This document shows, piece by piece, positions 12,173 to 44,165 of a stretch of 64,000 nucleotides of DNA. Within the stretch, counting starts at the first letter, position 1; each line of letters starts with the position of its first letter. Source of the DNA: Podarcis filfolensis. Its lineage: Eukaryota. The position numbers and the translations under genes were made by a program. The stretch lies in the NCBI GenBank assembly GCA_964270895.1, contig OZ185443.1, one strand, 5' to 3'. The notes beneath the pieces are model-generated. The model searched no databases. It saw nothing but the letters and a program-made list of their open reading frames with translations, and was not told where the DNA came from.

Positions 12173-12225
12173 CTGTTAAAGGAAGAAAAGGGATGGGAAG
12201 AAAGAGAGATGGAGAGAGGGAGGTG

Positions 12226-21343: not shown

Positions 21344-21569
21344 CAGTGGTCCCTCGGGTTACATACGCTTCAGGTTACAGACTCCGCTAACCCAGAAATA
21401 GTACCTCGGGTTAAGAACTTTGCTTCAGGATGAGAACAGAAATTGTGCTCCGGCGGCGCAGCAGCAGCAGGAAGCCCCATTAGCTAAAGTGGTGCTTCAG
21501 GTTAAGAACAGTTTCAGGTTAAGTACGGACCTCCGGAACGAATTAAGTACTTAACCCGAGGTACCACTG
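21344..21569. mobile_element. Tigger-like MITE, family 1
   Basis: TIRs CAGTGGT(A/C)CCTCGGGTTA, TA TSD; five copies in the window. Confidence 0.9.
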
Positions 21570-22167
21570 TATATAAATACACCAACAACATTGGTTTGTG
21601 CAATTGTACAAATTTTAGAAATGGGTTTTTATTGATTTTATAGTCTGTATCTTTTTTATCTTGTTTTTTTTTAGTCTATGGGACCCCCAAGCCACTGCTT
21701 CTGCAATTTTGCATCAATGCAATAATAGTGCATGGGTGGTGTCCACACATAGTTTCACCCTATTAGTTTTTCTGCGATGCTCCCTCAATGTTATTTGTGT
21801 TACAACAACTTACATGATTTCCGCAAGGAAGTTAAGGGACATGTACTCATTAGAAACAAAGCAGTATGCATACCCTAAAACCTTTGCAAGCTGAAACAGC
21901 ATTAATAGCAGGATCATGTATAATTGCTCTGATACCATCATGATCACAAATCATTAATAATTTGGCCAACTGGAAAGGTCCTGCATCTTTTGTGTGTTAT
22001 CTCATTTCATCTCATTGTCCAACAGTTTGAGAGTTTAGAAGCAGTTTAGAAATCTGTGAAACCAATCAAATGAATAAGCATAGCCAATTCGTGGAAGCAG
22101 CACATAGATGAAGCAACTGTTTATCTCCTCCTAACTGTTTAATAGACTTGATGGGGGAGGGGGGAAG

Positions 22168-22257
22168 CATAGCTGTCAACTTTCCCCTTTTCTTGCGAGG
22201 AATCCTATTCGGAATAAGGGAATTTCCCTTTTAAAAAGGGAAACGTTGACAGCTATG
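22168..22257. mobile_element. 90-bp hAT mini-MITE
   Basis: about 25-bp TIRs starting CATAGCTGTCAAC; perfect 8-bp TSD GGGGGAAG at 22160-22167 and 22258-22265. Confidence 0.9.
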
Positions 22258-22890
22258 GGGGGAAGCAATCTGGGCAGATGGTTGTAAACAAGGACAAACA
22301 AAAAATGAAGAAGTTCCTTTTGTGACTTTATGTTTTAAATGTCATGCATATGAAAGGAAGTTTATTCCGGTTGTTGATTTATATGGAGCAGCAGGGAAAG
22401 GCGAATGGTGGGACCAAAACAACAAATCCACATTGCACAAGTAAACCCTTTCATTGGCTTGCCCCAAAGGAAGCCTTTTCTCCCCAGCTCTCCAGAAGCC
22501 AGCCCTGCCTTATCAGCTCTGCAAAATGGAGAATGAATGCCTTGTTCATTATTATCGCTGAAGTCATTCCTATTTATGCCGGTATTTCATGGATTATGTT
22601 TTTATGAAAACACTTTCTTGCCTGTGAATAAACACAGGCGCTTTAAAAATATTTGTATGCAAAATGTATCGAAGGCCATTATGAAAATGCTTTGCGAAAA
22701 GGCAGTAAGAAGCCTTTTGCAACCTCGGAAAAAAAGAAGAAAAAAGAAACCCTCTCACATTTTCTCTACATTTTCTTTCATGCTAAACAGTCCAAAGAAA
22801 AGGCCTTTTCAGAGTTAACTAGTTTCAGCGATACCAGTGTTTTAGTGTAATGAATAACTTTTCAAAGGGGACAATCACACATCGCTCAGT

Positions 22891-23243
22891 ATGCTGGTAT
22901 TTCTATTTCTGTGCACCACCAATGGAAGGATTTCTGTGGCAGAATTTCTTTCTCAGAGAAAGCTGAAGCGATCAAAACCCTGATTAACCTCTGATATTCA
23001 CGTGCTGCTCTTGATCTTGGGGACCGAAGCTGTAACAAAGAGTTAATGGCAGCCATATGCTTGGGGTATTGTAGGTTCCGCTGACCCAAATGTGAACTCC
23101 ATGAGTGACTGCAGCGAACTGCTGTTTGTTCCAAGTTTGGCGTGCAGATTACTGATGAAGAGTTTGAGCTTCTACTTGACAGAATCCCCCTTGATGAAGA
23201 TGGAAATGTCAAATTTCCCCAGTTCATACCCATGTTTGATTCA
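22891..23243 (+). pseudogene. disrupted EF-hand coding relic (EFCAB6-like)
   Basis: 23115-23243 reads RTAVCSKFGVQITDEEFELLLDRIPLDEDGNVKFPQFIPMFDS (helix-loop-helix EF-hand); 22915-22950 reads TTNGRISVAEFL; stops and frameshift between them. Confidence 0.6.
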
Positions 23244-25758
23244 CAATTTACAGCCTCGACTTTTTGAATTTGTCATATGTCAATCAATTTCTGTTTGCTA
23301 GAGAAGCTTTGCAATAATCCACGAGAGCAGGTTCAGGCTATCTGGCCGTGTTGCATTTTATAGCATTTAATATTTTCAGGAAATGCAATTTGCCTCATTC
23401 AGTGACAGCTTAATTGGTGTTTAAGTACTGAACAAAGTTTGACATTCAGGGCATTTTCACACACAAGAGCTCAAGCGTTTTCAGATTTGAGAGTTGAATC
23501 AACCTAGGCTTAAATTTGGTCCTTACCATGGAGGTAAAACCTATACGGGCTACAAGGCACTTGCAATTTTTATTCCAACTTGTCATGCTTTGAAAATACT
23601 CACAGATGGCAGAAAGAATATGAAAGTGGCTCAAATCTGGTGATTCTTAATCTCATGTGTGAAAACGTTCTTGTTTGAACTGGGAATATGTTTGCAAGTG
23701 TGACAAGTGAACAACTTTTTCAAAAGGTTTGTAAGACATACTTTTTTAGTGAAGCTTTTTTATTGAAGGTGTTTCTGTGTCTGACTGCTTAGATCTGCGT
23801 TCCTAGTGTTGGTTCTGTTATAATGGGCAGGTTATATGTTGGGGAAGGGTGTGCATATTGAGTCTTCCCTAGGAGATAAGTCCAGAGTTCTGAGTGAATG
23901 AGAATTCATTCTTTCTCGATTTCCCTTGAAGCTTTTAAATGCTTGTAAAAACAAGAGTGGTGGATATTGTGTCTGCACACATACAAACCCATAATGTTTG
24001 CAATGGGTTAGGTTTATGTTCCACTCCCCATTTGATAAGACTTATCCATCATAGCTCTATCACAAACTACTAGTGATTGCATGTGTCTTAACCTTTTATG
24101 GGGACGAAACTAACTTGAGGATTCTTCTGGTATCCAAGCACCATTAGATTTTTGTGTTTTTTCAAAAGTTTTACTTTTCAAAATAAAATAGCCAACAATA
24201 TTGGTTTAACATGGAACTTAAAAGCCAAATAAAGCATTCCATTACTGTATTTATCATTAGGATGCAGAGGCTGTGACTGGTGAAGGTATTTTATGGCAGA
24301 ACTGAAACACTGACTTAGCAATCGACAAATCAATTCTGCAGCCTGTCCCAGTGTTATCCTGGTACAGGTCATCATATGGTTCCCAGGCAGCCTTCTCTCA
24401 TTTTTCTTCATTTATTTAAGCAACACTGAATATTCCTAGTTGCATGCACTCACATTGATGCCACATTTCGAAAGTGTGGGACTGAAATGCTTCTGTGGAA
24501 TTGTGGCAAAGCTGGTTTCTACAAGGGCAGATTTAACTCTCTCCACAAATATTTATTTTTCTCCAAAGATTTTGGTTTTGAGAATGGATGGAGCGGCACA
24601 AATTCAAAAGCAGCAACACATTTAAATTATTAGTATTACAATACGAGCAGAAAGCAACAAAAAAATTCAAAAGCCCTGGCCAAAGAAAACTCTCTTTACC
24701 TGGAGTCTAAGGTCTAATCCTATATGCATTTATCTGGGACCAAGATCACATTGAACTCAGCAGGATTTACTTCTGGGTAGAATGGTATAGGTATAGGATG
24801 ACACTGCAAAATTCAAAGGAGTAGCAATAAGCTATGTAGGCCAAAGGAGGACATTCCAAATATGGGTGTCACCTGATCTCTGGTCCCCACTCTTCTACCT
24901 CAGCATGCAGGAGTATCTGTAAGAGGTACTCTCCAGATAACTTTAAACTCCAGAAGGGGATCACTGGGATTGGAGTCTCAGAAAAAGAGAATGTATTTGG
25001 GTGGGAGGAGAATTGATACTGTAGTAGCAACCAAGAGGGGCTTCAAATTTGTTATGAACAGGTGCAAAAAAATCCAAACTATGGGTCCAGAAACATATTG
25101 GCTGTAGCCTCCTGAATCCCTTCATTTCATGTCAAAAAATATTTGCTGGAGAATATTGGGTGCAGCACTACAGTGAACACCAGACTTGTCTAATTCCGGC
25201 TGTGTTATCTCAGAGAGAGAGAGGATTTACAAGTCAAATGATCCACTGTGCCTTTTGTCAGCCAATTAAAACATCTTCACTGGGACCTACAGAACTAACC
25301 TTTGTGTGGTCTTTGGTCTCGGATGGAAATGATCGCTTGACGCGTTTGGCAGTGTGAATTTTGAGACGGTACAAAATGTGTGTGGGAACTTGGGGGGGAG
25401 AAAAAAAAGCCCATCTTAAAAATAAGTAGGATCAGGGTGGTGATGGTGAGGGGGGGGAGAGAAAGGTGACGTTAGAGATGCTGGTAAAAGTTAGTCGTGG
25501 TCAAGCTTGGGGCGAACAATAGCGCAGTGTTGTTATGGGCTGCTTTTACGACTTAGATATTCTTCCCATGTCAGTATAATCACTACTGGGAGGTAGCTCG
25601 ATTAAGGATTACCATATCATTAATAGTATCTATGACTTTTGTTCAAAGGCTACTTGTGTAATGTTGCCTTGTGGATGAAGCTTCCTAATCCGCTGAGCTG
25701 CAGCTGTAGAGGAGGGCCTTCCTTAGAGGCGCCCACACTGACTTCCCTGTCCCTTGGA

Positions 25759-25979
25759 NNNNNNNNNNNNNNNNNNNNNNNNNNNNNNNNNNNNNNNNNN
25801 NNNNNNNNNNNNNNNNNNNNNNNNNNNNNNNNNNNNNNNNNNNNNNNNNNNNNNNNNNNNNNNNNNNNNNNNNNNNNNNNNNNNNNNNNNNNNNNNNNNN
25901 NNNNNNNNNNNNNNNNNNNNNNNNNNNNNNNNNNNNNNNNNNNNNNNNNNNNNNNNNNNNNNNNNNNNNNNNNNNNNNN
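25759..25979. other. assembly gap (221 N)
   Basis: run of n. Confidence 1.
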
Positions 25980-26938
25980 TGCATGAGAAAAAGCACATTT
26001 ATTCTGTCTGTCTGTCTAATGCTCAGCCTTTTCTTATTTTCTTTGGCAACACAAGGCATGCTTGCTGCTGGGTGCCCAAGCTCGATGTGCTCCTATGCTG
26101 GCTTGGCTAGTTTCTCGCTACACATAACTGCCTTGAAATTGAAAATGTGTATGTTCAGACAACACTCTTGGAGGCTGAAGTGCTAAATATTAACAGTTTT
26201 GCCTAGTAAACCATGGTTAGAAAACAACCTACTTTAACAACAGCTATGATGCAAGTATTGGGTGCAGATACATAGCCAGTAGAAGAAATTACTGTAGTGG
26301 GAAATAAATGTGGCAGGTGGGAATAAAACCATAGACTTAGGACAGAAAGTACTTCTATGTAGGCTTTATGACAATAATCCACTTTTAAAAATAACAAACA
26401 AACAATGAAGTGCCTGCTGTCATCCAAGTCCAACATTTGGAAAAGGAAATGTCAGGTCTGTGAATAAACGGGCAATTTTGCAGTTAAGAAACCAGGTCCT
26501 GCTCACAGTTGCCTAAGCATGTGCTTGAGTAGACCCTGCAATAAACTTAAAGAACGTCTCTATCCTAGGTATTTCTGATCTATGAAAAACAGACAGGGTC
26601 TGCAATTATTCATGTTTGCCACTTAGGTAACAGTTTAAAAGTTAGTTTGGTCCAAGTCATACAAGCTGCTTCTCATAGGACACTATTGAAAAGATTTGGA
26701 ATGCCGCCTTTGGGGTCAAAATGTGTCAAATGCTTTCTTGTCTCCATGGAATTGTTGGTTTCTCAAGCAACATATATTGCAAAAGGCTTCGCCCGTTAAT
26801 TGTCTATACATTTTATTTGCCTTTCTTTTACTGTGCAAGTTATTTTTCTGATATGGGTGCTTTTACACATTTGTCTTATATCTTTCTTTCTTTGTCTATA
26901 TTTATTATCTAATATTTATATCTATATGCTTCGCTAAG

Positions 26939-27021
26939 AATGGTTACTGGTTAGTCCTGATTCCAATGGAGCCATAACGACTCTGAAATTTTCAGTCCAA
27001 CATTTCCCCAATGAAGATCTT
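26939..27021 (+). pseudogene. EF-hand-like exon relic
   Basis: after a pyrimidine-rich stretch and AG (26937-38): WLLVSPDSNGAITTLKFSVQHFPNEDL, matching EF loop positions D3,N5,G6,I8,T9,F13. Confidence 0.42.
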
Positions 27022-27750
27022 GTTACTTCAGTGCTATTATAAACTTTTGCTTTGGGATGACATTGACTCCTTTGATCATTAATTAATTTTTATCTACAGC
27101 CAGCCCTATCCCCCAAACTCAGTGAAGATAAAAAACATTTCCCTGTCATTTCCTCAATATCCCATATGAGACAGTGAATAGTGTTACTATTCCCACTTTA
27201 TCAATGGGATTATTGTGACTGAGAGATAGGACCCTATCTAAAGCACCTAATGAATCTATGTGATACATAGAAAGGAATATATACATCAAAGCACAAGTAC
27301 CAACTTCAGTTTTTCTATGGCAGACTACACAACAATTAAGTAAATGTAACATCACTCAATGGCTAAATGTTACATCACTCAATGGTTTCCTTGTGCAAAA
27401 AACTGATCAAGGTTGAAACTTCATATCATCTAACATCACCTCAAAGGCCCTGATCCAATGAGATGCACCCAGCAATCAGATGCCAACACTGATCACGCCT
27501 TCCAGCGAAAGAAAGGAGGGGATCTGGGGAATTTCTAGCTGGATTTTGTCACTAGATGTGAGAATGTTTTCAAAAGAGACACCCAAAAACTAATTTGAAT
27601 CTCTCTAACACTTTTACATGACTGCTGTTAATGCAGAATTTAGAATTCAGGAGATAAACTGAATGTACACTGCAGGCAATGAAGTTTTTATGTTCCCATG
27701 AGCGCTGATTTAAAACAAAGATTACTTAAGCCTCTTTAATGAAATGCTAG

Positions 27751-27819
27751 GAGTCTCTCCTTTGGGCTAATTGTGACTCTCATGGTATACTTAATCTTGT
27801 GCTCATTTAGCACATTCTG
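27751..27819 (+). pseudogene. EF-hand-like exon relic with in-frame stop
   Basis: TAG|ESLLWANCDSHGILNLVLI*HIL|GTGAGT, 69 nt phase 0-0. Confidence 0.42.
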
Positions 27820-27852
27820 GTGAGTCTGGTATAGGAATGGCTTGTGGATGAT

Positions 27853-28184
27853 ACCAGGCCCTCCAAGTGTCCCTATTTTCCAGGGACAGTCCTGGATTTA
27901 CAGAAGCTGTCCCGGTTTCTGATTTGATCCCAGAATGTCCCGCTTTTCCTTAGGACATCCCTTTTTTCATCAGAGAAATGTTGGAGGGTATGGAGTTATC
28001 TGACCCCCCCCCAAGCCATCTGAAGGGAGCCCTGTATACGGGAAATGTTTAATGTTTAATTATATTTTTATATATGTTGGAAGCTGCCCAGAGTGGCTGG
28101 GGCAACCCAGTCAGGTGGGCAGGGTGATGATGATGATGATGAAATAGGGTGTCCCTGTTTTCATCTGAGGAATGTTGGAAGCTA
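27853..28184. mobile_element. hAT-like MITE with adjacent L2 3' tail and partial repeated end
   Basis: CCCTCCAAGTGTCCCTATTTT...GAAATGTTGGAGGGTATG, L2 tail, then a second GTCCCTGTTTTCATC...GTTGGAAGCTATG. Confidence 0.55.
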
Positions 28185-28249
28185 TGTGATACTAATAAAA
28201 AGAATATTAATCATTGTAGTAAATGGCAGGTATGTGGCACTTTAGAGTA

Positions 28250-28544
28250 GGCCACATTCGCACCATACAATTAAAACACCATTATACTATAGCAGTCCTA
28301 TCTTCCCCCAAAGACTCCTGGGAACTGTACTTTTCTAAGGGTGCTGAAAGTTATTAGAAACCCCCTATTTCCCTCACAGAGCTACAATTGCTAGAGTTCC
28401 TTGGGAAGGGAGATTGGTTGTTAAATCACTTTGGAAATTGTAGCTTTGTCCCCTTAACAAGCAACGGTTCCCACAGTTCTGTGGGGGAAGCCATGACTGT
28501 TAAAGTCGTATAATGGTGCTTTAGACGTAGGGTGTGGATATGGC
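28250..28544. mobile_element. Harbinger-like MITE
   Basis: imperfect about 37-bp TIRs (GCCACATTCGCACC...CACCATTATAC / GTATAATGGTG...GTGTGGATATGGC). Confidence 0.65.
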
Positions 28545-29107
28545 GAGAGGCCTAAGGGCCTAATCTGCTCTCTCTCTGGCCCTCATAATAGCCTCATTTT
28601 TGTGTATCTTGCTTTCTCTGGATGCAAGCAGAGATAGCTTGCGAGATGCTAGCTGATGTCTCTTTCACTAATTATTTCCTGGTATGAACAGAAATAGAGG
28701 CTGTGACAGAATTCATCCCACCCCAATGTGCTTCAGTTGCCCACTCCCATGTGTGAACCACATGAGGCCCAAACCTCATGTGACAGAAATAGAATTTTAT
28801 TATTATTTATTTTTATTATTACGGTCACATACCAGTTCTCGCTCACTTACAATATCCGGAAAATCATGAAACACAACAGGAATGCATTGAATTGCAATTG
28901 GTTATAACAGAGACAATTCAGATATAGCGGCAGTTAAAAATATATATTAAATCTTGATCACTAAAATATAACCTAAAATTATCATTTAAAACCTTAATCA
29001 CGTGACAGAAATATAAGCCAAGCAAAAAAAAAAAAAAAAGGGATGATGATTATTATTACAACTGCACTTGCACTTTAGCACTGAAACAAAAATTGGTTTG
29101 TTTTTTC

Positions 29108-29244
29108 AAAGGTAAAGGTAAAGGTACCCCTGACTGTTAGGTCCAGTCGTGGACGACTCTGGGGTTGCGGCGCTCATCTCACTCTATAGGCCAAGGGAGC
29201 CAGCGTTTGTCCACAGACAGCTTCCAGGTCATGTGGCCAGCATG
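29108..29244 (-). mobile_element. 5'-truncated Sauria SINE
   Basis: 3' 135 bp only; TTGTTTTTT repeated at both flanks. Confidence 0.85.
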
Positions 29245-30206
29245 TTGTTTTTTTAAAGCCACACAAATACCAAAGACAAAAGGAAAGGAATGGGTGGAAA
29301 TAACCACACTGCAGATCATGTAGTGGTGGAGGGGGAAGTAGCCAACGCATAGTGCAGTCCCACTGATCAGGGAGAGAAGGAACCGAGGAAGGACAAATCC
29401 AGTCTCTTGATCCCTCTCGCAAACTGCTAATTTGTGGAATTTGTTAAGGGCTCCAGCTATGCAGGGCAGGTGATGGTAGCAGTTCAAGCAAGAAATTCAG
29501 GGGGGGACAGGGATAGGGATTCACCTTCCATGTCACAGTTGCCTCACAGACCATCATTGCTTCTTACCAGGCAAGTCAAAATCACTTTGCCAGTCGGCAT
29601 GCAAATCACCACAAACCAAGCCTTTTAAAAGAGAGAAGGACGGTGAAACTATTGGAAAATAGCAGTCATTTTGGATCAGGACTATTACCTATTCTGGTTC
29701 AGCATCCTGTTTTCACAGTGGGAAACCAGATGTCTCTAAGGAGCCTCCTAGCTGGACTCTCCCCAGTAATCCTTACGACAGCTCTGTAAAGTAAGTCAGT
29801 ATTTATCATCTTCATTTTGCAGAAATAAGACTGCCAAAGCTGGACCTCCTGTTGGCGGTGAGTTTTGAGCCATGGACTTCCTAGACTTATAGCCCCTTCA
29901 CTATTTCTAGGTGTGGAGTTTTTGTAAGACACCATAATTAACGGATGTCCAAAGGAATAAGAAACCTAGCGTTGTATACAATAAAATGGGGTGGAGGTGG
30001 ATATGGGGAGTTGCACCATGATGACAAAAGGTTGGAGAAGCAAATCTGGATTCGGTTATAATGCCACATCATAATCACCTGCTTTTAAGACAAAACTGTT
30101 ACTGCAAAGGTGACATATCTGAGCTCATTAGCAAGAAACATTTTGGCACTTGTGGACCAGTATAAAACTGAACTCATATTTCCATAGTATAGCTTTTATT
30201 ACCCAG

Positions 30207-30249
30207 TTTAATTATCGAAGATCAGAAGTCTGGCTCTCTCCTATGAAGG
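30207..30249 (+). pseudogene. weak EF-hand-like exon relic with 2-nt deletion
   Basis: CAG acceptor 30204-06; LIIEDQKSGSL then, restoring a TC lost from CTCTCTC, SYE. Confidence 0.28.
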
Positions 30250-33151
30250 TCCCACAGTTAAGAATTTACACGCTTTGTCCCCATATTTACAATACCTTTT
30301 GACTGAGATGTCTAAAACCTTTTAGCATAAGGTTTAAGCAGTGGACAGTCAGCTCTGGCACTTCTTAGAAATCTTTTCAGAGGGGCCATGTGGCTGAGTT
30401 CTAATCCGGGAAGAGCCACTGCCTCTCTGTGTGATCTGACAGAGTGACATATCACTTGACCCCGGTCACAGCAGCTGTAGACCTAGGTTAGAAAGTCAGG
30501 CCTGAACAGAAAAGCGGGCCATGCTATCTGTCCAGTCCTTTCCCTGCTAATAAATGAGAAGTGCTGTTTTTTTCCTTGTCCATTCCCTCCACAATTCAAA
30601 TATATATTTATGAGGGGCAGGCAAGAATTTGAGCCTCCCTTTCAATGCACACGTTTTCATGGGAAATTAAAAACCTATACATTGGCTGTCTAACAACTCG
30701 AAACAATAGATACTCCATGTGCATACCTGAATCTTTAATTTATACATTTAACTCTGACAATTTATCAACTTCAACTCAGTGGCTTGCAGAGGGGTGGGGG
30801 TGGGGAAACAAAAGGACTGTTTAAACACATAGCTAGAGCTCTGCCTAGCCAGAAATATTTTAATATATACGGTAAGGGGCATTTTTACGTATGAACACGT
30901 GGTTTTTAATCTCACTTTTGTTGAAATACCTGTTCAGATATTTGGATAGTGCGCATTACTTTATACACTGAAATCAGGATTGATAGAATATTCTCATTTT
31001 TAATGTCAGCTGGTGATGGTTTATTGTTGTTGCTGCTGCTGCTGTTTTAAAATTATTGTTATTATTACTATTTTAAATTTAAATTGCTTTTTCTGTTGTA
31101 TTCATAATATTTTTAAAAAAATCAGAATAAACAAACAAATAATGGGAGCTTTGAGGAAAAGAGGCATATTTTTAACAAAGGAAACTAAAATAGCACCTTT
31201 AATGCCAAGTTCTTTTCTAAGCATGATAAAATATTGATGAAAAGAAACCAGTTCTTTGTCTAAGCCTGCAGAGGGCGCAGTGCTTCTTCTTTAACCCTCT
31301 CGGGCATACAGTTCTGTGGAATTCTTAAGTTGGCAGTTTAAAGTCTATCAAGGCGGCCTGCTTACAGAATACACTTGCTGGGACCATAGGAGGGGAGAGT
31401 GCTGCTGCACTCAAGTCCTGCTTGTGTGCTTCTCACAGGCATTTGGCTGGCTCATGTGAGAACATGATGCTAGAACATTGGCTTGGTCCAGCAGGCTCTC
31501 CTCATGTTATTATGTTCATATATAGGAAAGTTGAATCCATATTGCTCGAGGGTGTGATGTGTTTTGTGGGTGTGCGTTATCGATCAGTGTCCTACACTTG
31601 GCTTTTAAAAAGGGTACAAGATGTCAAATTAACGTGCATTGCAAAATGATTCTATGCATTTATTGTAACGATGGCCATGTTTTCTGAGCAACTACAAAAA
31701 CCCAAAACAATAACCGGGGTAATGAATTCAGTTTAGCAAAATCTCGTTTAGACACGAAACATGATTCCCATCCCCTCAGTTTTGAAGTGGTTATTCTATG
31801 CTGCTAGGAAATTATTTTACTTATTTGGGCGGCCTAATTGACTCATACATATGTCAGAGTGAGTCCTGTGGGGCTTACACCCAAGCAAATGTGCAAAGGA
31901 TGGCACCTTTTGATATTTCCATCCCAAATAAACGGGGGAATCTGGCTCTTTTAGCATACATTTTCTCAGATTGATTCTTTTGAGTTCTTCCAAAGTGTAA
32001 GTATGAAGGACCTTCAGACAATATGGAATATATTTCTTACCGTCGGCTTCTTACAGAGTAATCTGAGCTACAGAAATTTCAGCCTGGCCAACCAGTCTCC
32101 AAATATAGTAGGTCTATTAAAAGTGCTGCAGTTGGGAGCTGGCCTTCTCTCATGCCAAATCATTTGACCTTAACATTAGCAAATATTTTGATTCCTGCTA
32201 GTGTATGTCTGAGCATAAGCCATCAAAAGGAATCCATATTGCAAGCTGTCCAGGGAGCCTGTCAGTCCCATGTTAGCAGCCCCCGGTCAATGAGGTCATC
32301 ATCTTTGCCCACATTTTGCTTCTTTGAAACATATGTTTATGCAACATCCAACACTTACACATTTTTGGATAAAAGCATTAGGATGTATAAATACTACTTT
32401 TGGGGAATTAAAATCGTCAAATGATAATATTATCCTAAACCACATACCAATTATGTGGGGTTTGACAGTCGGTCATCGTAGATAGACTTTTCGTGCCCTT
32501 ACTTCTGCCAAAAGATTGATATTGACTCACTAGAAAGAGAACACTACACCCCCCCCTTTGATCAATGAATAGAAGATATGACAACTCTTGCAACATGTGA
32601 ACAGGTTGCTTTTAGATGCATGGATAGATATAACGATCCTTGGAATGCATTTATGAAAAAATTATAATGACTCGTTAATAATTGTATGCTTGCTGGAATA
32701 ATAGCATTACTTACCGGTATATACATATATACTGTGTTCAGTTTCGATCACCTTTTTCTTCCCCCTCCCTCCCATTTCTTTATTTGTCTCCTGAAATTTT
32801 TTAATTAATAGAAACTTTGCCCACCCTGAGTGCCATTGTCCACTTATAGCATGTGACATAGCAAAGCACGGAAGCAGCTGCGCTTCTGCTTCTGTCAAGG
32901 CAACCAGGCCCAGCCCACGCCGTGGTTCAGCATCGCTTAGCTGTGGAAGCTCATAGGCTGTCAGTAAAACAAGCCTCCACCTGAATATGTGAAAAGTTAC
33001 ACTTGTCAGAGTTTGAGGGTGGTGGGGAAAGGGCCAGCCCTCCCATTAGGTAGAGGAGCAGGTGGCCCAGTGGAGGGAGCCACATCGGCTGTCTCCTTGC
33101 ATTCTTTTTTACTGCAGCGGCCAGCCACAACATACCCTTCTGCTTCCTATA

Positions 33152-33385
33152 CAGTGGTACCTTGGGTTACAAACACCTCAGGTTACAAACACTTCAGGTT
33201 ACAGACTCCACTAACCCGGAAGTAGTGCCTCGGGTTAAGAACTTCACCTCAGGATGAGAAGAGAAATCACATGCTGGCAGCAGTGAGAGGCCCCATTAGC
33301 TAAAGTGGTACCTCAGGTTAAGAACGGTTTCAGGTTAAGAACAGACCTCCGGAACGAATTAAGTTCGTAACCAGAGGTACCACTG
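33152..33385. mobile_element. Tigger-like MITE, family 1
   Basis: CAGTGGTACC TIRs; TA left, GA (mutated) right. Confidence 0.88.
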
Positions 33386-33944
33386 GATTATATTTAATAG
33401 TTAAAATGAAACAGCTATGTTGGAGTGGCAGCCTGTGATGTCTTAGTGCTTAGGTGCAGGCGTTCCTATGTATATGCACTACAGTCAAGGTGCATCTGCC
33501 CCACAATCGGTAATGTGCCTTCGAGAGACCTGAGGAAGGACAGCTGAACACCAAAGACTGGCAGATGCAGTGCGGTAAGAGGCCTGCACAAACTCTGCCT
33601 CCCTGAGAAAAATTGAGACAGTGTTTTACCAAGAACAGGTACCAGAAAAATTGGATCGTTGTTCCTAAATAGGAATCATCGTAAATGTGTGGGTATTTCG
33701 GTCAGGTTTTTGAGAAAACGGACGCCATTGCCCTAGCACTCACCTGCAATACCAAAATAATACCAGAAGGTGGCCGACTTGCTGGAACTTCCATTCCGTA
33801 TACTAAGCTATATCTCAGCAGTATATTTTGTGGTTGCATGCTGTTTCTGAACTGGGATAGCTTGAACACATGCTGGTAACCTCAAGGTTGGATTTCTGCA
33901 ATGCTCTGTATGTGGAACTAGCCTTGTTTGTTTGTTTGTTTGTT

Positions 33945-34690
33945 TGTTTGATTTATATACTGCCCTTCATCTTGAGATCTCAGGGCATTTCACATAAATA
34001 AAATACAAGATAAAAACAAACAAATAATTAAAACAAAGCAGCAAAACAATAAACACTCCCCCTTCCAACAAACACATTTTAAAGGCTGTAGAATATTAAT
34101 CAGCCAAGGGCCTGGTTGAAGAGGAACGTTTCCACCTGGCACCTAAAATATATATTTAATGAAGTTGCCAGGCAAACCTCCCTGGGGAGAGTATTCCGCA
34201 AATGGGGAGCCACTACAGAGCAGGCCTGTTCTCGTGTTGCCACCCTCCAGACGTCACAAGGAGGAGGCACATGAAGAAAGTGATGAACACAGAGTATGGG
34301 ATGGTTTATATGGGGAGAGGCTGTCCTTGAGGTCCTGAGCCATTTAAGGCTTTATAGGTCAACACAAGCGCTTTGAATTTGGCCCAGAAAATGATTAGCA
34401 GCAAGTGCAGTCAGGCCAGGATTGGTGTAATATGTTCAAACAGTTTTGGCCCAGTGAGCAACCTGGCCGCCGAACTCTGACCAGCTAAACCATCTTCAGA
34501 GGAGCCCTGCATTTAACATGTTGCAGTAATCCAAACTAGAGCTTACTGGATAATAAACTACAGAAATTGGGCTATCTGTCCCTATCCCTATCTGTCCAGA
34601 TAGGAGTGTAGCTGGGCCATCAGCTGAAGCTGATGGAAGGCATTCCATGCCACTGAGGCCATCTGAGCCTCAACCGACAGCAGAGGATCC
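33945..34690 (-). mobile_element. L2 LINE 3' fragment
   Basis: (TTTG)n tail at left, degraded L2 RT sequence; a short plus-strand L2 piece (LVTSRLDFCNALY) lies at about 33871-33920. Confidence 0.7.
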
Positions 34691-35161
34691 AGGAGCATAG
34701 GAGCCAACTCTTAGGGGCTGAGGACCCTTTGGCCCCCGCCCATAAAATATTTGAGGGGCCTGCCCACAAAAACATTAATGGGCATTGCCATTCAAATGGT
34801 GTGCATGTGTCGCATCATGTGATCAATTATGCAGGGCGGGGCTTACCTGTCCCCCGCCCCCATATTTTATTCAAGTTGACAACTCTGTCCAGGAGTACCC
34901 ACAAGCTATGTCCTTCAGAGGAAGTGTAACCCCATCATGAGCAGGCAGCCTCCCAGCCTTGTTGGTTTGGCCCTGGCTAGGTGAGGGCAAGCTACTGCCA
35001 GCCTATAACTCCTTGTGTTATACCAGTAACTGTCAACATTAACCACGTTCCGTACACTTTACCTTTTTAGTCCCTTTCTTCAGTGGTTGGCAATGTGGGT
35101 CCCAGGACCTGCAAAGGCTTTTCTCTGTATTGCTTCATTCTCTCCCCGCTGCCATATGATA

Positions 35162-35430
35162 GGTAAAGGTACCCCTGACGGTTAGCTCCAGTCGCGGATG
35201 ACTCTGGGGTTGCGTGCTCATCTCGCTTTATAGGCCGAGGGAGCAGGCATTTGTCCGCAGACAGCTTCCGGGTCATGTGGCCAGCATGACAAGCCACCTT
35301 TGGCGAACCAGAGCAGCGCACAGAAACGCCTTTTACCTTCCTGACGGAGCAGTACTTGTTTATCTACTTGCACTTTGATGTGCTTTTAAACAGTGCTTTC
35401 TGTGGTTTAGACCACAGCGCCACCCGCATC
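35162..35430 (-). mobile_element. Sauria SINE with internal deletion
   Basis: both ends present, 10-bp TSD CCATATGATA (35152-61, 35431-40). Confidence 0.88.
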
Positions 35431-38400
35431 CCATATGATAACAAATCACTATTACCTCAGAGAAAGTGGTAGGGGTGGCCATTTTACAAGGGGGCTGGAA
35501 AAACCACCTGAAATCAACCCACGGTCCTTAGGTTGCTTACATCTGCAGTTCCTTTTAACCGTTGAAGCAGGCAGTTGTCTAGGAAAGCTTGTGCCACTTT
35601 AAGCCAATTAGTCCCTGAGGTACAATAGCAGTTTTCCTTGCCCTGCTGCTACAGAACACAACAGCACTCCTTCCCAGCTTTGCTTTGGTGAGCCATATCT
35701 AATTAGCACCTCCTTATTCAGCAATATCCTGTTCTGCTGCTTAATTAAGAGTCTCTTGTGGCACATAATTCTCTGGGCTTCCTGTCTTTCTTTAGAGAAG
35801 TACACAAAAGCAGCAGGATCCCCTCCTCACCAGGCATTAACTTGATGTGGTGATGCTTTTTCTGAGAGACTTGACTTCTTGCCTTGTGCCTCCTCACCCC
35901 TTCCATGCTGAGATGCCTTGTTCCTTTCCCTCCCAGGGTCATGTCCTACACAGCATCCCCACTGCGGCATGCTCTGCTGGGTCACAGAAACATGAGATGA
36001 CACTTTGAAATACCATAAACATAGGAGGAAAACAAAATAACGGCACTCTGCACCCACATATCTAGATCCTTCTGGAAATACGATGGGACGCTAATGGCAG
36101 GGCCGCTTTAGGCTTCTGGTCCTCTTGCACCTTTAGGTGGGTACAGGATGGGACCTGTTGTTAACTTGTTGGATTCAGCCTCTTAAATAGCAAGCATGTT
36201 CCCAAGAACAGCCAGTGGATGCTTCTTAGGTTTCAGCCCTGGAAATATGTCATCTATGTTCAAGATCACATGAGGACAAGCGTCTTAAGTAAAAACTGTA
36301 GCTGTTCTTTACTAAAGAATAGGAAGAAAAGCAGCAACAACAACACATTTTCTGCATATTGCCAAGACGCTTTCTTTTAATAATCTGTTTAAACAAACTA
36401 GTGGTACTCCCCCCTTTTTTTCTTTTTTCTTTTGCTTATTGACATAAGCATTCATTTGCTAATTTGCAGGACATTAAACTCCACCACTGAGCCTCCTCTC
36501 TCTTTCCCGCCTCCCTACCCTGCAGTTCCTGAATGCGAGATAAATGCTTTCCTTCTTAAGGTTGCTTAGACCCTGCATGAGTCCCGGCACACATGTGTCC
36601 CCACCCACCCCAACCCAGTCTCTATCTTCTATATAAAAGTCAATGTTTTGATCGCCTTAAAGGAAATAATGAGTTAAATGGACCAATATTCTCTCCTTGG
36701 CTCTCAAACTGGGCCTTTTCATAAACGCCTCTGAGCACCTGCAGCAGCTAAGTCGTTTACACATACATAAATAAATAAATTAACAATGAATAAATAATTT
36801 AATCCTCCCGCCCTCCCCATTTGCACAATGACACCTTGCGGATTTGCTCCAAGTGAGTTTTTTCTTTCTTTCTTTCCCCATTTCTCCCCCCCCCCCAATT
36901 TTCTTTCTTTTTTTCTGATAAAGTCCTCTCAGATACTTGCTGACTGTCAGGCTAATTTTATTATTGTTTTCGCTTGATTAGTTCTGTATGACCTGGGTCG
37001 CCCTTAAAACCCACATCTCTCGGGGAGGCTCCCCAAAGGCTGCCTTTTTTCCCCCTTCCACCCCTTCCTCAAAAGGGATGGAAAGTGCCTGCCATTGCTC
37101 CGGACAAAAGCCCTGGAAGGTTTTTCAGTTATTAGTCTTCTGAAGCAGCCCCTTCCGCTCACCCAACCGCAAAAAAACCTCATTAGGGGGGCACCTTTAT
37201 TTTCTGGCTTCTATACCCAATGCATGTAAGGGTTACATATGTCAAGTTTCTCAGGTCTTGGATGAATCTGAACATTCTCTCCTTTAACCCTGCAGGGCTC
37301 TTTAAGTTGAGCCCACCACAGGGACTCGCTGCATCTTTTCACTTCTACATTGTCTTGGCTCAAGGGCCACGGATCCTTTAAAAATAAAAAGGAAAATGCA
37401 CACACCCAGAAACAAAAACCTAAGATGAACTTGTGTACAACGGCATAGGTATTATATTGCTGCACAGAAGTGAACTTTGACAGGTGTGCATCAACAAGCA
37501 GCAACAGATAAGCAGTGTTACCACAATCTCATAAAAGTTTCTCCCCAAAAGCAAACCGAAAACCCACACCCCACTAAAAGCAACAAAAGAATATTGTTTC
37601 AACATGAAAGCTAACATGAGCACCTGTCTGACATGTGGATGAAATACTCTCCAAATAAATTTACCCTTTCCAAAATATATGGAAATATATATATCTATGA
37701 AAATACTATGAATACTAGAAGGGTGAGAAGCTCATTTAAAAACAAAACATTTCCAGAGGGTTCGCTGTGTTATGCTGCAATCCTAGCCCATTTACCTGGG
37801 AGTTAGACACACTGCACTATATAAGACTTAACATTGTTAAGTAGACATTGTTAGGAGGACTGTGTTGTTAGTCTGTTGCAGGCAGCAGGGAAAATGAGCC
37901 TTGTGGCATTTTTAAGACTAAAAAACTTCTTCTGGCATAAGCTTTTGAAATGGACTCATGCCTGCAAAAAAGTCTACTATAATAAGGTGTCCCCCCCCCC
38001 ATCTTTGCTGTTTTTGCCCCTACAAAAGACTGACACAGCTACCTGGTTGGGTTTTTTTATTAAAAAAAACCCCCAAACCCACAGAACAGCTTTTCAGCCT
38101 TTCTGTGAAAACTGCCTATCATTTTGAAGAGGGTACATGTATTTGGAGGGGTGTGCCTTAGTTGTCTATATGCAGGAGTCAACCGCAACACGGTCCTGTT
38201 CATAGCTGTGCAAGTGCTTGTGTGAATTATAATAAATTGTTCTTTCCTGCTATGAAAAAACAAGCAAGCCGTGTTCAGTGGCAGATTTGGGGACCTCAAA
38301 TTTCTGTGGCGCCTTGGGCGACACTAAAATCCAGCTCCCTCCCTGCCTCTTGTGCTCTGTCCTACATCACTGTTGCAGCGCCGTCCCCCCACCCCACCCC

Positions 38401-38661
38401 CAGTGCCGGTGCACAGTGTGGCCACACCAGTTGTACTACCCTAAAACCACCTCTACCATGAGTGATGAGAATGCTATTGTGTTATATCAAGTGAAGGCGT
38501 ACCTAGCTCTCTGGGGTTTTGTGCAGCTAGGGGCCTGCTTGATGCCATTTCATGACTCGCAGCTGGTACTGGACAGCACATGTTTCTGACTGCTGAAAGA
38601 AGACATTTGGGAGTATGGGAAGAGTGTGCAAAGCCCTGTGTCCATATTGCATTTTTATTAT

Positions 38662-38705
<44 letters not shown>
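38662..38705. repeat. (TAG)n microsatellite
   Basis: about 14 units. Confidence 0.95.
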
Positions 38706-39435
38706 TTTGAATCTTGCCTGCCACCTTCCCATTGGCCTTTGACTGGTCTCTGTCTCTCACTTCACCCTGTTGCATGGTCCTGGGGCAGTCCAGGCTGAAG
38801 AGTCTCTAGCCATGAGGGGTTTGTTTGTTCAATAACGCTTGAAAGCACAAGTGACCTCTGTATTAAGAAGGCTGCCGGTCACTGGGTAGACCCATGCTGA
38901 CTGTAAGGCTCCTCCAGCAGTTAAGGCAAATTCAAGGAGACTGAGGCCTGGTCCTAGCAAGCAGCTTTGTTCCTTACTCCCATGGGCAGAGAGAACCTTT
39001 GATTTCATGGGGATGATTATTTTTATTCTTGCCCAATCAAGGATGAAGCCCAAGGAACAAGAGATTGCCCCTTTCAGAGACGCAACAATGGATCACCTCC
39101 AGCCCAAACCACTGGGAAGTTTTCTCTGTGTTTTGTTGAGGGCTCCTGGAAACCAGCACTATACAACTTACTTAAAAGGAGAGCGCATGAGAAGGGGAGG
39201 CGGCATGAATCGACACATTGTGGGAAGACAAGATGGGAGGGAGACACGCTGAACTCTTAACTCTGCCTCCAGATACTTCTCTGGCCAAGACTAACATTAT
39301 TGTCCTTAATGGAAGGAAATTGAAACTACTTCCAAAGTAATTCTCGGTCTTTATCGCAGAAGGCAGAAATGAGCGGAGGCATTTCAGGGCTAGAGATGGA
39401 GACAGGAGGTTCAGAGAGTCAGGGAAATATCTGAG

Positions 39436-39437
<2 letters not shown>

Positions 39438-39478
<41 letters not shown>
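39438..39478. repeat. (GT)n microsatellite
   Basis: about 20 units. Confidence 0.95.
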
Positions 39479-39482
<4 letters not shown>

Positions 39483-41124
39483 AAGGGGACAAGACTTTTA
39501 TCCCAAAGCCATTGTAAATCTAAAGCAGGGTTTATCCTCCTCTGTGAAATGAAAATTGGGGCAGGGGTGTTGAGATCAAGAACAACATTTGAGCCACAAA
39601 GACTGTCATGGGCCACTGCAAGTTTGCAGAATTATATGTAAATGACCTAAGTTTTGAATGTGGTGGCCTTGTGCTAATCCCAGAAAGAATATCTACTTAG
39701 CAAAAGAAAGTGAGGGAGGGCGGTGTGGTGGTTTTTGTCTAATTTGGTTAACAGTGGCCAAAAGTTGAATAAATTAATAATAATTTATATTTCCAGGGTA
39801 ACACTATCTCTGTAATGCTTCTGTGCTGCAGGAGTTTCTGAATGGCTTTGCGCCAGGAGAGAGAGAAAGAAATAGTCAAAGTTTTTTTTCCTTCTTCTTT
39901 CTCTCTCCATATTCTATCTCAAGGGATGAAGAAAATGAGTGTAAGACATGTTTTCCAATAATGGGCGCCAGGCACTCAATTTCTGCCGCTTCTATATTAT
40001 CCCTGTGGACATTTAACAAGCGCTATTTTCCTACAGCGCTCATTTGGATTTGGAGCCACAAGTGTGTCTTCACAAAACAGACAGTTATTTCTTCCCTGTC
40101 CTCAAATTGTCCACCAATATGACCTCTTTTTAAGTCAATCTGTCACACCCGGTTTTTCTGTGTTTACAGTTTAAATGGAAGAAATACACTATGCTTTATA
40201 CTCATTGTAATGAGGATTTTTTTGTCTGTCTCAGGATAATGGAGCTGATGGCTCACAAATTGTGGGTCAGCCTCTTCCATGACCTTAGTAAACAATCCAG
40301 CTCAGATCTCCCTAAAGCCTGCAGAATGAAATGGAATAAGTTAATTTACCTTCCGTCAACTGATCCGGAAGCCCAAAACACACTGAACAATGTAAAATAC
40401 TGATTGACACACACGTAGGGAAATATTTTCCCCCATAGCACATGAACGAATGCTGGTCTGGAACACAGCAAAGGTAAGTGCAACCTGAGGTAATAATAGG
40501 ACATTAAAATACAGGAATATTTGTGGGGTGAGAGAGAACTACACTGCAGCATGATTAATACATCTGAATTTAGAAAGTAACCTTTAGAATCATTGGATTG
40601 CCAAAACCTATACTTTTTGTTAGTTTGGCAAATTTAAAATCATTTTTTTAAAACTAACAACATTTTTCTGGTGTTAACTCTTTTGAAGTTTTAGTCAATG
40701 ACACTTGTGTGAACTGCTGAAAATGAAGTCTGTTTGTCCTTTACATGGTTTTAAGATCAAATATCTGTTTATACATAAGAATGAAAAAATGCTGTATGAT
40801 GATATTACTTCAGTATGGCATGAATGATTTTTTTTCCATGGGGGAAAGAATGAACTGTGAGCTCATTGGACAAAAGGAGGTATGTTGATGCAGTTTAAAA
40901 ATAAATAGTTTATATGGAAAGAGAGAAACAGCGCAGATCTAGCATCAGCTGCCATATGCAAGGCAAACAGTGCTGGATTAGCAAATAGGCAGAGTAGCCT
41001 ATGGGCCACACGACTTTTAGAGGCCCCACGACAATGGATCAAAATAGTATTGATTTGATCTTGAGAGAAAATTACAAAAATGTATCAGGAGATAATCTGC
41101 AAGCCTAAATGAGAGACAATGACC

Positions 41125-41310
41125 TGGGAGACTAGGGCTCAGATCTTCATTTATTCATGAAGTTCGCCTGGTGAACTTGGGCCAGTCACTGTCTCTCCAC
41201 CTAACCTACCTTACAGGGTTGTTCAGTTGATAAATGGAAAATAGGAAAACCATGTATGCAGCCTTGAGTTTTTGAAGGAAAGGCAGGATATAAATGTAAC
41301 AACAACAACA
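41125..41310 (+). mobile_element. old CORE/MIR-like SINE
   Basis: TTGGGCCAGTCACTGTCTCTC...CTTACAGGGTTGTT core and (AAC)n tail; further degraded copies near 10970, 14180, 27150, 29770. Confidence 0.6.
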
Positions 41311-42030
41311 TGGGAGTTTGGGTCAGTGCATACTTGAATTTTCTTTTTTCCTTATATTGAGATCTTATATGGAGTTCACCTTCATGGCAGCTATGCCTAT
41401 GTACCTCAGCAAGATTTTGTTACCATTGTTCTGAACAATTATAGAACCAAACTGTCAAAAGCCCTGGCAGTAAGTATTTTTCTTCTTTATTTACTCTGTG
41501 TTTTACACTCCCTTTTTGGTTTTCATTTTATATATGGTAACATTCCATTCAGCCTGCAAAAGGTGACTGGGAAGGGCATGGGGATTTATCTTTCAGGATT
41601 TGAGTACTTCAACTTCTTCATCTTAAAAAAAAGCTTATCCTCATTATGTAAGACTTCACCTTACTGTACAATGTAAAATTGGAGCCTTTCCATTTCCCTA
41701 CAGGACTTCTTTGCATGTTTTGCATAAAGGCAGAAAGGGTACGATCTGAAAGCAAGTTAAAATCTCACTTCTTGCAGCCTCAGTGCATCTCTGTTGAATT
41801 GTAGCATTACCTGGCTGAAATGCATATATAAACAGAACCACAAACTATCCTGGAAAGAGCTCTCACACCTCAAGTAGGCTTAGTCATCATTTTCTTTATG
41901 GATTCACTGAGTCATTGTGCTTTGCTTTGCTTTGCTTATTTAAATATGTATACTCTGCGTTTTGAGGAGCTTTCTCCCAAAAGCTGCTTATAATGTCCAT
42001 TGAAAACCAACTCCATCAGACAGTACAATA

Positions 42031-43370
42031 CAGTGGTACCTCTAGTTAAGAACTTAATTCGTTCTGGAAGTCCATTCTTAACCTGAAACTGTTCTTAACC
42101 TGAGATACCACTTTAGCTAATGGGGCCTCCCACTGCCGCTGTGCCGCCGCTGCACAATTTCTGTTCTCTCTTTTTTATATATATAAGATATTTATTAAAG
42201 TTTTTAGAAGTACAACAATAAAAATTAAAAAAACCTCATTTTAAACAAGAAAAGATAAAATACAAAAAAGAAAAAAAGAAAAATCAAAAAGAAAAAACAG
42301 AGAATTGAAATCCATTAAGCAAAAAATAAAATTCAATAAAAAATACAGCAAATCTTCCCATTACTTATCTTTCATTAACTTATTTCCCTGACCTCCTCAC
42401 ACCTCCCTTTTTTGTATTCTAAGTCAATTATCCATTTCAGCAAATCCTTTCCCTCTTTTCAAATTTTTGTCCTGTAAATTTATCTTAAAATTAATATAAC
42501 TTTACTTTCCCTCCTTTCACCAACTAACAGTCTATTTTTCCTAAATCTTTGTAGCATTTCTGCTAAAATCACATAAATTCATTCCAACATCATTCTAACA
42601 TTCATTAATCTTGCAATGTTTCTGTAAATAGTCTTTGAATTTCTTCCAATCTTCCTCCACCGACTCTTCTCCCTGGTCTCGGATTCTGCCAGTCATTTCT
42701 GCCAGTTCCATGTAGTCCATCACCTTCATCTGCCGTTCTTCTAGGGTGGGTAGATCTTGTGTCTTCCAATGCTTTGCAATAAGTATTCATGCTGCTGTTG
42801 TAGCATACATAAAGAAAGTTCTATCCTTCTTTGGCACCAATTGGCCGACCATGCCCAGGAGAAAGGCCTCTGGTTTCTTCAGAAAGGTATATTTAAATAC
42901 CTTTTTCATTTCGTTATAGATCATCTGCCAGAAAGCCTTAATCCTTGGGCATGTCCACCAAAGGTGAAAGAATGTACCTTCAGTCTCTTTACATTTCCAA
43001 CATTTATTATCAGGCAAATGATAAATTTTCGCAAGCTTGACTGGTGTCATGTACCACCTGTATATCATTTTCATTATATTCTCTCTTAAGGCATTACATG
43101 CCGTGAACTTCATACCTGTGGTCCATAACTGTTCCCAGTCAGCCATCATAATGTTGTGTCCAACATCTTGTGCCCATTTAATCATAGCAGATTTCACCGT
43201 TTCATCCTGAGTATTCCATTTCAACAGCAAGTTATACATTCTTGACAATGCACAATTTCTGTTCTCATCCTGAAGCAAAGTTCTTAACCCGAGGTACTAC
43301 TTCCGGGTTAGCGGAGTCTGTAACCTGAAGCGTTTGTAACCCGAAGCGTTTGTAACCAGAGGTACCACTG
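42031..43370. mobile_element. Tigger-like MITE, family 1, split by an L1 insertion
   Basis: halves 42031-42168 and 43249-43370, TA at both outer ends. Confidence 0.9.
42169..43248 (-). mobile_element. 5'-truncated L1-clade LINE (ORF2 C-terminus + 3' UTR)
   Basis: CCHC knuckle KCWKCKETEGTFFHLWWTC; one CGA>TGA nonsense, frame continues to TAG at 42595-97; AATAAA and A-rich tail; 18-bp TSD TGCACAATTTCTGTTCTC. Confidence 0.92.
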
Positions 43371-44165
43371 TATAAAAATAGGAAATGCAGTATAACTAAA
43401 CAATAAACCAGAATAGAAAGTAAAGTACAGTAATAGAATATTCAAAAGATTAAAAAAACCAACAAGAATTTTAAAATACAGTAATAAACAAATGCTGGGA
43501 TAATCCGAGCTGAAATCCCTCTGCTAGGAAATCATGAGACATATTTGGACATAATTATAACCAGCCGTAAGTTCACCACCTGCAACTAATAGTCACTTAA
43601 ATCAAATGTGGATGAATAAAAATTCACAGTGCAACTTTGTATGTTTGTTCAGAAGTATGTTAATCTACAGCTATCAGAATGAGAGCAATTGCTCCAGAGT
43701 CAGTGGGTTCTGTTTTCAATCCTCCACTAGAATCAGATCAAGTAACATGACTGAATCTAGCATGTTAAGATGTGGAAGTCACATCAGGAATCATCTGAGG
43801 GTGACAGAATCATGTAATTGGTCATCACTGCCCAGCTTCCCAAGGGTATTGAATTACGCAGCAAACACCCAGGTCTCATTCAGACACTTGCTGTCTTCCA
43901 TGGGATCACTGTTGGTGTGTGTGTGTGAAATTCAACTAGGATCACATGGAATCTCTAGCTATTTGAACTTTCACCTCTGCATGAGGTCGGGGGGCTGGAC
44001 ACACACACAGCCATTGTGGTATGTGCAGTATTGTAGATCTTTTACCTGCTTCTGCAGTCACACAGGTTACATGACTGCTGCATGTTGATCTCCCACATGT
44101 GAACACCTTCCCCATACAAGCAATGGGACATGACCATAGTTTAATGGCAGAGTATATATGTTTTA

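Follow-up and report, generated by a model that had tools for sequence, protein, structure and literature searches.

A probable sole surviving exon of a lost EFCAB6-like gene within conserved non-coding sequence between SLC25A4 and HELT in Podarcis filfolensis

The stretch analyzed here (hereafter, the window) comprises 64,000 nucleotides of the genome of Podarcis filfolensis (GenBank assembly GCA_964270895.1, contig OZ185443.1), and its subject is a trace of an EF-hand gene between the genes SLC25A4 and HELT. We consider it likely (probability of about 0.8) that the plus-strand exon at 23135-23245 is the only recognizable remnant of a unitary pseudogene and that it has been kept within a conserved non-coding block. 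The gene, one of two vertebrate copies, was ancestrally situated between SLC25A4 (head-to-head) and HELT (tail-to-tail); it is intact there in ray-finned fishes, has visibly decayed in birds, and is reduced in the window to a single exon that is very unlikely still to be spliced. An earlier note, made from the sequence of the window, had proposed a decayed multi-EF-hand gene of the EFCAB6 type in this interval, built from several short segments, and what became of those segments is described below.

Only one of the segments held up. The piece at 23115-23243 on the plus strand, which the note had considered the only individually convincing one, is a genuine EF-hand-encoding remnant, and its translation, RTAVCSKFGVQITDEEFELLLDRIPLDEDGNVKFPQFIPMFDS, is the sole clean EF-hand-like peptide among those listed. 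The open reading frame (ORF) that contains it (23112-23264; 51 codons) scores 22.8 bits against Pfam EF-hand_11 (PF08976; cutoff, 21.7 bits), with a query that contains translated intron, while the 36-amino-acid (aa) exon alone scores 16.5 bits against the same cutoff. A PDB search with the 51-codon ORF gave EFCAB6 as the top whole-protein match, via many weak repeats, with the fourth EF-hand of calmodulin a close second. An exhaustive phmmer search with the ORF returned short bird or other-assembly fragments that are 67-84% identical, proteins of ~850-1000 aa that are matched at residues ~480-560 with 40-56% identity, and also long multi-repeat proteins. Taken together with the tblastn searches, the matches to the ~900-aa EFCAB6-like proteins are 44-56% identical and fall at a constant position, residues ~500-545. 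In those tblastn searches, of a kind that the note had suggested, residues 520-569 of the ~900-aa homologue from the bowfin Amia ocellicauda match the exon with an E value of 2e-12 and 56% identity, and all 12 family proteins used match 23115-23264 at one and the same protein position (residues ~480-560). A hidden Markov model (HMM) of the family gives 42.3 bits in whole frames and 38-53 bits in 50-aa tiles (top tile, 53.1), at profile positions 501-547. By blastn, the exon is 72% identical to that of Amia and ~91% identical to that of the hawk Buteo buteo. In the Ca2+ loop, PLDEDGNVKFPQ, positions 1 and 12 are occupied by P and Q, respectively, and the loops of the fish orthologues are similarly degenerate. 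The PROSITE EF-loop pattern PS00018, with at most one mismatch, has 0 matches in the six frames of 14001-45500, and it misses the genuine exon because the loop of the latter is too degenerate.

The limits of the segment had to be redrawn. The exon anatomy was taken from an alignment with the hawk and Amia, plus three further Logan contigs (L003, L004, and L006), and it places the ancestral exon at 23135-23245, so that the upstream peptide “RTAVCSK” is translated intron containing a CTAAC branch point and a polypyrimidine tract. Exon boundaries, branch point, and polypyrimidine tract line up in the window, the bird, and Amia, where the orthologous exons are found at ~30272-30382 of the Buteo locus (L001) and at 22106-22216 of the Amia locus (L002). 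The exon is about the 12th of the 18 coding segments of the ~900-aa EFCAB6-like gene. Both splice dinucleotides are mutated in the window only, and yet the reading frame is open: the acceptor context is CAA/G in the window versus CAG/G in all other species aligned, and the donor context is A/AT versus G/GT in the hawk, L004, L006, and Amia. An alternative AG at 23134-23135, shifted by one nucleotide, would alter the phase. The loss of both splice sites makes it very unlikely that the exon is spliced into a coding mRNA.

The peptide might be a chance EF-hand-like ORF, or the exon might derive by processing or transposition from EFCAB6 or from a calmodulin-like gene, since the fourth EF-hand of calmodulin matches nearly as well as single EFCAB6 repeats in PDB and since the exon alone falls under the Pfam cutoff. 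However, the match with an E value of 2e-12 falls on the homologous exon of the syntenic gene in Amia, the intron boundaries and the branch point are shared, and fish and bird agree in gene order and orientation. What the orthologous locus contains is one exon flanked by conserved intron sequence, not an intron-less copy placed elsewhere, and the shared boundaries, branch point, and polypyrimidine tract indicate that it is not a retrocopy. An origin by chance, processing, or transposition is thus scarcely credible and can be considered already refuted by the synteny and the alignment of exon boundaries.

The proposed ancestral arrangement, with a multi-EF-hand gene head-to-head with SLC25A4 on one side and tail-to-tail with HELT on the other, is supported by the bowfin, in which such a gene is intact in exactly this order and orientation. 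The Amia locus contains CFAP97 (+), a gene for a 298-aa Mito_carr protein (−), the gene for a 926-aa EF-hand protein (+), and a gene for a 224-aa protein with HLH and Hairy_orange domains (−), and the identities of the two neighbors were confirmed by tblastn, for which the SLC25A4 and HELT exons of the window served as queries. HELT itself has basic helix-loop-helix (bHLH) and Orange domains. In the herring Clupea (L009), the EF-hand gene (+) is followed downstream, tail-to-tail, by the gene with HLH and Hairy_orange domains (−), and in Buteo a 125-aa “EFCAB6” model begins head-to-head with a Mito_carr gene (−). Across these outgroups, there is thus an intact gene in the bowfin, a tail-to-tail HELT in the herring, and at least 11 disabled relic exons in the hawk. 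The shared order and orientation identify the remnant in the window as the SLC25A4-HELT-linked copy.

As to which gene this was, the description as multi-EF-hand and EFCAB6-like is correct, but the gene is not EFCAB6 itself. On the basis of its sequences, the parent gene is assigned to a separate ancient paralogue family of ~900 aa. The proteins of ~850-1000 aa are annotated as “EFCAB6” or “EFCAB6-like” and come from bowfin, sturgeon, characiforms, herring, arowana, lungfish, frog, sea cucumber, periwinkle, and coral; the SLC25A4-HELT-linked members are Amia XP_066574296.1, Clupea XP_031415239.1, and Scleropages XP_029115115.1. In a maximum-likelihood tree, the ~900-aa clade stands apart from the ~1500-aa EFCAB6 proteins with support of 100/100, and identity between the Amia protein and the latter amounts to no more than 21-23%. 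EFCAB6 proper (“EFCAB6” chains in PDB entries 7rro, 8i7o, and 9cpc) is the best solved-structure match of the relic and has the same repeats, EF-hand_11 and EF-hand_7, with degenerate loops such as “IPLxxxG,” but it differs from the Amia protein in belonging to a separate clade and in being ~600 aa longer at the N terminus. Within the ~900-aa family, the vertebrate proteins form two subclades (100/100), one of frog, sturgeon, and lungfish and one of bowfin and teleosts, and the discordance of these with the species tree suggests two old vertebrate copies.

The second vertebrate copy lies upstream of a ZP-domain gene in both the frog Nanorana parkeri (L007) and the sturgeon Acipenser oxyrinchus (L008), and in the sturgeon it adjoins a gene for a GPAT-type acyltransferase. 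The two copies may be duplicates from the two rounds of whole-genome duplication (2R), and we take the human counterparts of their neighborhoods to be paralogous regions. The “EFCAB6-like” gene of Nanorana was considered as a tetrapod orthologue and rejected, as it is the other vertebrate copy and is without neighbors or conserved blocks in common with the window.

With the Amia protein as query, about 18 coding segments are resolved in its own locus and 11 or more relic exons in that of the hawk, collinear and on the plus strand; in-frame stops and a frameshift occur among them. These relic exons are disabled; in birds, the gene is therefore a pseudogene, of which the short “isoforms” annotated there are fragments. 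The NCBI models in question, “EFCAB6 isoform X1-X3” (105-125 aa) of Buteo buteo (OZ076920.1; L001, 8824-57246), splice a few of the relic exons. They are probably misannotated fragments of a transcribed pseudogene and not EFCAB6 proper.

In the lineage of the window, decay has gone further, and the suggestion that the gene is now dead there, as a unitary pseudogene, agrees with a single exon being left and its splice sites being lost. As far as sequence comparison reaches, the gene is eroded or deleted in the window except for that exon, and no further exon is detectable. With tblastn, the 12 family proteins find nothing better than an E value of 0.04 in the window outside the relic exon. The family HMM finds a single domain in full six-frame translations with X at stops, namely, the relic exon, and in 50-aa six-frame tiles the second-best tile scores 3-4 bits, below the maximum of the reversed sequence used as a control (9.5 bits); the maxima of 12 Markov shuffles were 0.7-5.8 bits. 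When the relic exons of the hawk were compared with 13970-45640 by tblastx and by blastn at a word size of 7, only the relic exon of the window was retrieved.

Two candidates for additional exons were considered and rejected. The first, at 19127-19276 (+), translates as SKLAT*CHFVFLSLLATF, compared with the bird peptide AKLANLVQSHFISLLAMF, contains stops, and scores 3.8 bits at profile positions 460-498. It has the right order and strand, and its bird counterpart is the exon two before the relic, but it was rejected because its estimated E value is ~4 even within the 5.5-kb syntenic subinterval. The distance from the relic to the exon that precedes it in the ancestral gene is 1.8 kb in Amia, compared with 12 kb in the hawk. 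The second candidate, a minus-strand pair at 26729-26682 and 26580-26509 (E values of 2-5), is on the wrong strand and lies over a conserved non-coding block in an ancestral intron.

The remaining segments of the earlier note did not withstand the same analysis; their translations are interrupted by stops or lack a convincing register. It had read EF-hand peptides at 22915-22980, 26939-27021, 27751-27819, 30207-30249, 41362-41469, and 41704-41745, all of which score 2.2 to −4.6 bits with the family HMM, like shuffled DNA; no Pfam EF-hand was found in the three pieces scanned (22915-22980, 26941-27021, and 41362-41469). The six-frame scan with the family HMM against shuffled sequence, similar to a scan that the note had suggested, places the relic exon far above the controls and the others at the level of the controls. 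The positions of conserved anchors also exclude every segment other than the relic exon. The “NGRISVAEF” peptide at 22915 lies within a conserved former intron, where the hawk has a 1-nucleotide indel and a TAG. The segments at 26.9-30.2 kb lie in the ancestral large intron, as judged by conserved anchors shared with the hawk and Amia, and this intron is free of exons in both (Amia L002, 22268-34088; hawk, 30404-55663). The segments at 41.3-41.7 kb lie past blocks that are located downstream of the last exon in Amia; the 3′ exons would be expected in the window at about 37330-38821. These other five or six segments are chance matches.

The question of why one exon of about 18 is still recognizable is best approached through its surroundings. 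The block that ends with the exon (22394-23242) matches 29562-30382 of the Buteo locus with 80% identity over 864 bp and also matches the Logan contigs L004, L006, and L003. In 50-bp bins, identity to the hawk is 0.80-0.98 over 22766-23215 (elsewhere cited as 90-98%) and 0.55-0.69 just past the exon end. Identity to the hawk and L006 is 86.6-88.5% in the former intron (22520-23134) and 90.7% in the exon. By the NG86 method, the values for the exon versus the hawk are 0.074 for nonsynonymous divergence (dN) and 0.205 for synonymous divergence (dS), with a dN/dS of 0.36; the estimates are from 36 codons, so that dN/dS is indistinguishable from 1 or from strong constraint. For an exon of SLC25A4, a neighboring and highly constrained gene, dS in the same pair of species is 0.671, about three times that of the relic exon; versus Amia, the dS of the relic exon is 1.5-1.6. 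In L003, the most diverged contig, the frame is broken and the central ~37 nucleotides are nearly unchanged. A dS one-third of that of SLC25A4, together with an intron as conserved as the exon, indicates that the constraint is on the nucleotides, as in conserved non-coding elements (CNEs). The preservation of the exon thus appears to be best explained by constraint of the CNE type and not by slow decay.

It is quite unlikely that the exon is a neutrally decaying, functionless relic that owes its state to a recent death of the gene in this lineage or to a low local mutation rate. Relics of pseudogenes can persist, and the lineage of the window has 5 amino acid changes and has lost both splice sites, as would be expected of such a relic. 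Against this, some 17 other exons are unrecognizable, compared with 91% identity of the relic exon to birds, the ~600 bp of non-coding sequence before the exon show 87% identity, and identities of 74-87% to a fish are seen in several other blocks. Furthermore, the dS of 0.67 for SLC25A4 in the same neighborhood indicates that the local mutation rate is not low.

We regard it as very unlikely, too, that the exon still codes for protein, in a short or remodeled gene or a microprotein transcript like the 105-125-aa models of Buteo, such that the peptide is what is conserved. An open frame over 51 codons, a dN/dS of <1 for the exon versus the bird, splice sites that are intact in Buteo, L004, and L006, and the use of the exon in bird gene models would all be compatible with coding. 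However, both splice sites are mutated in the window, which has no detectable partner exon, other bird exons carry stops and frameshifts, and the exon, whose synonymous sites are frozen, is matched in conservation by the intron beside it. Moreover, five of the six amino acid differences from the hawk are specific to the window and affect residues kept from Amia to birds.

Two further features of the block were noted. The most conserved part of the former intron, at 23034-23059, contains a SOX-like AACAAAG (23034-23040), a homeodomain-like TTAATGG (23043-23049), and an E-box, CATATG (23054-23059), a set that, from pattern reading, resembles those of neural enhancers. On the minus strand, a 115-aa ORF without gene support (22886-23233) overlaps both the relic exon and the conserved block; it probably arose by accident, the conserved sequence being poor in stops.

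The unitary-pseudogene remnant would, then, have persisted because it forms the 3′ end of the ~0.85-kb conserved non-coding block. The block may be one of a collinear series in the introns of the ancestral gene and the flanks of HELT, with the exon acting as an “exonic remnant” or regulatory element, and the EF-hand gene may formerly have been a bystander in the landscape that regulates HELT, a developmental bHLH gene. Conserved blocks inside the introns of a bystander gene are the arrangement expected where a developmental transcription factor is surrounded by a genomic regulatory block, and the block is, by its position, probably regulatory for HELT. The split of birds and squamates occurred hundreds of millions of years ago. 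More tentatively, and with a likelihood somewhat short of even, the exon and ~0.7 kb of upstream intron may have gained an essential cis-regulatory role, for HELT or SLC25A4, and have outlived their host gene since that split without a genome duplication.

Several points weigh against this account. A regulatory role is read from position only, as is the choice of HELT over SLC25A4 as the target. The upstream block cannot be aligned to Amia, so that the element is not demonstrably older than the sauropsids. The open frame of the exon and its dN/dS of 0.36 versus the bird are weakly compatible with residual constraint on the protein, and the low divergence may partly have been inherited from a long coding period. 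The two splice-site changes come from one assembly of the P. filfolensis genome and so from a single reading of the sequence. Finally, the assembly gap of 221 N, together with fast lineage-specific evolution, could conceal very weak relics of other exons.

Exonic remnants and regulatory coding exons in genomic regulatory blocks have been described previously (Dong et al. 2010, Nucleic Acids Res 38:1071, PMC2831330). As in those cases, a bystander gene beside a developmental transcription factor gene is gone, one exon is kept amid an array of conserved non-coding sequence, and the synonymous sites of the exon are constrained. Within the window, the host gene is lost with an exon kept, the exon lies in a CNE array, and constraint is seen at synonymous sites and in the intron (36 codons). 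The cases of Dong et al. concern duplicates that disappeared following the teleost whole-genome duplication while another copy in the same genome continued to code for protein, whereas the loss described here occurred in place and in an amniote lineage, conservation reaches ~0.7 kb into the former intron, and enhancer activity is putative. Compared with the intact SLC25A4-HELT-linked members of the ~900-aa family, the relic shares the exon (56% aa identity to Amia), its boundaries, and its neighbors, but it is 1 of about 18 coding segments, has had its splice sites destroyed, and is non-functional. It likewise resembles vertebrate unitary pseudogenes in being neither processed nor a recent duplicate and in its conserved synteny, and the bird relics carry stops and frameshifts; it differs from them in its extreme decay to a lone exon apparently selected for a non-coding role. 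The finding is thus a new example of known phenomena (unitary gene loss and an exonic remnant in a regulatory block) and a refinement rather than a new kind. It shows one copy of an EFCAB6-like gene, present from corals to fishes, to be disabled in sauropsids, with the locus and the state of decay given for two lineages, and it offers a testable example of an exon held by non-coding constraint after the death of its gene, which bears on how landscapes of the HELT type retain neighboring DNA. If the exon did gain a regulatory role and outlive its gene, it would amount to a natural experiment in amniotes, in which what an exon encodes can be told apart from what it regulates.

Table 1. Positions of the relic exon, the neighboring genes, and the conserved blocks in the window
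Feature	Position	Strand	Remarks
SLC25A4 coding exons	9549-9815, 10374-10523, 11679-12175, ~13402-13533 (span 9549-13533)	-	Head-to-head neighbor
Sauropsid-conserved block	22394-23242		Ancestral intron and exon; ~0.85 kb, ends at about the exon 3′ end; by blastn
Stop-to-stop open frame	23109-23264	+	Relic exon with translated intron on either side
Former splice acceptor	23133-23134	+	AA in window; AG in Buteo, L004, L006, L003, and Amia (alignment)
Relic exon, 111 nt	23135-23245	+	Peptide (R)FGVQITDEEFELLLDRIPLDEDGNVKFPQFIPMFDS; second, degenerate EF-hand of an EF-hand_11 pair
Former splice donor	23246-23247	+	AT in window; GT in Buteo, L004, L006, and Amia (alignment)
Deep conserved non-coding block	25206-25758		Ancestral large intron; 86% to Buteo (553 bp); 25450-25754 85% to Amia (~310 bp)
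Assembly gap, 221 N	25759-25979		Only N run in window; no ancestral exon maps there
Conserved block beyond gap	25980-26082		Buteo 40376-40497, 76%
Conserved non-coding block	30252-30517		Ancestral intron; 84% to Buteo; adjoins the 30207-30249 segment
Conserved non-coding block	36620-37329		78% to Buteo; 36944-37021 81% to Amia; last anchor before expected 3′ exons
Conserved non-coding block	38822-39225		74% to Amia L002 42663-43045
Conserved block	39584-39674		Member of collinear series
HELT	45605-48818	-	C-terminal exon 45605-46097; bHLH exons around 48209-48310 and 48540-48818; tail-to-tail neighbor

From SLC25A4 to HELT, nine collinear blocks are common to the window and Buteo and four are common to the window and Amia, some of them inside introns of the Amia gene (Table 1). 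The block at 38822-39225 is downstream of the last exon in Amia and therefore marks the 3′ limit of the ancestral gene. A search of 13-46 kb with Rfam found no known RNA family, and nothing relevant was found in the literature on conserved elements of HELT or SLC25A4.

The assembly gap lies inside a conserved non-coding block, with no reading frame across it, and our conclusions are independent of it. Its flanks match 39609-40161 and 40376-40497 of the hawk locus with strand and order preserved, and the two are separated by 214 bp there versus 221 N in the window, so that order, orientation, and approximate length are consistent. The deeply conserved block at 25450-25754 runs into the gap, and part of the element has therefore probably not been read.

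Upstream of the 5′ end of HELT, blocks of 40, 250, and 538 bp at 49703-50920 are 84-90% identical to the bowfin (84-87% for 49979-50920); these are probably the promoter, 5′ untranslated region, and proximal enhancers of HELT. Repeats are also present in the interval and beyond it. Fragments of the 3′ ends of BovB/RTE-type long interspersed elements (LINEs), with an ORF ending in HGVTKSRTRLND, are found at 17416-17919 (+) and 60670-61048, and repeats resembling short interspersed elements are scattered in the interval (e.g., 21352-21572, 33148-33392, 42024-42168, and 43250-43374). A 163-aa ORF at 42787-43278 (−) has a zinc-knuckle-like motif, CWKC...HLWWTCP, typical of the C terminus of ORF2 of L1-type LINEs; this piece of a retrotransposon is situated past the last conserved block, on the way to HELT.

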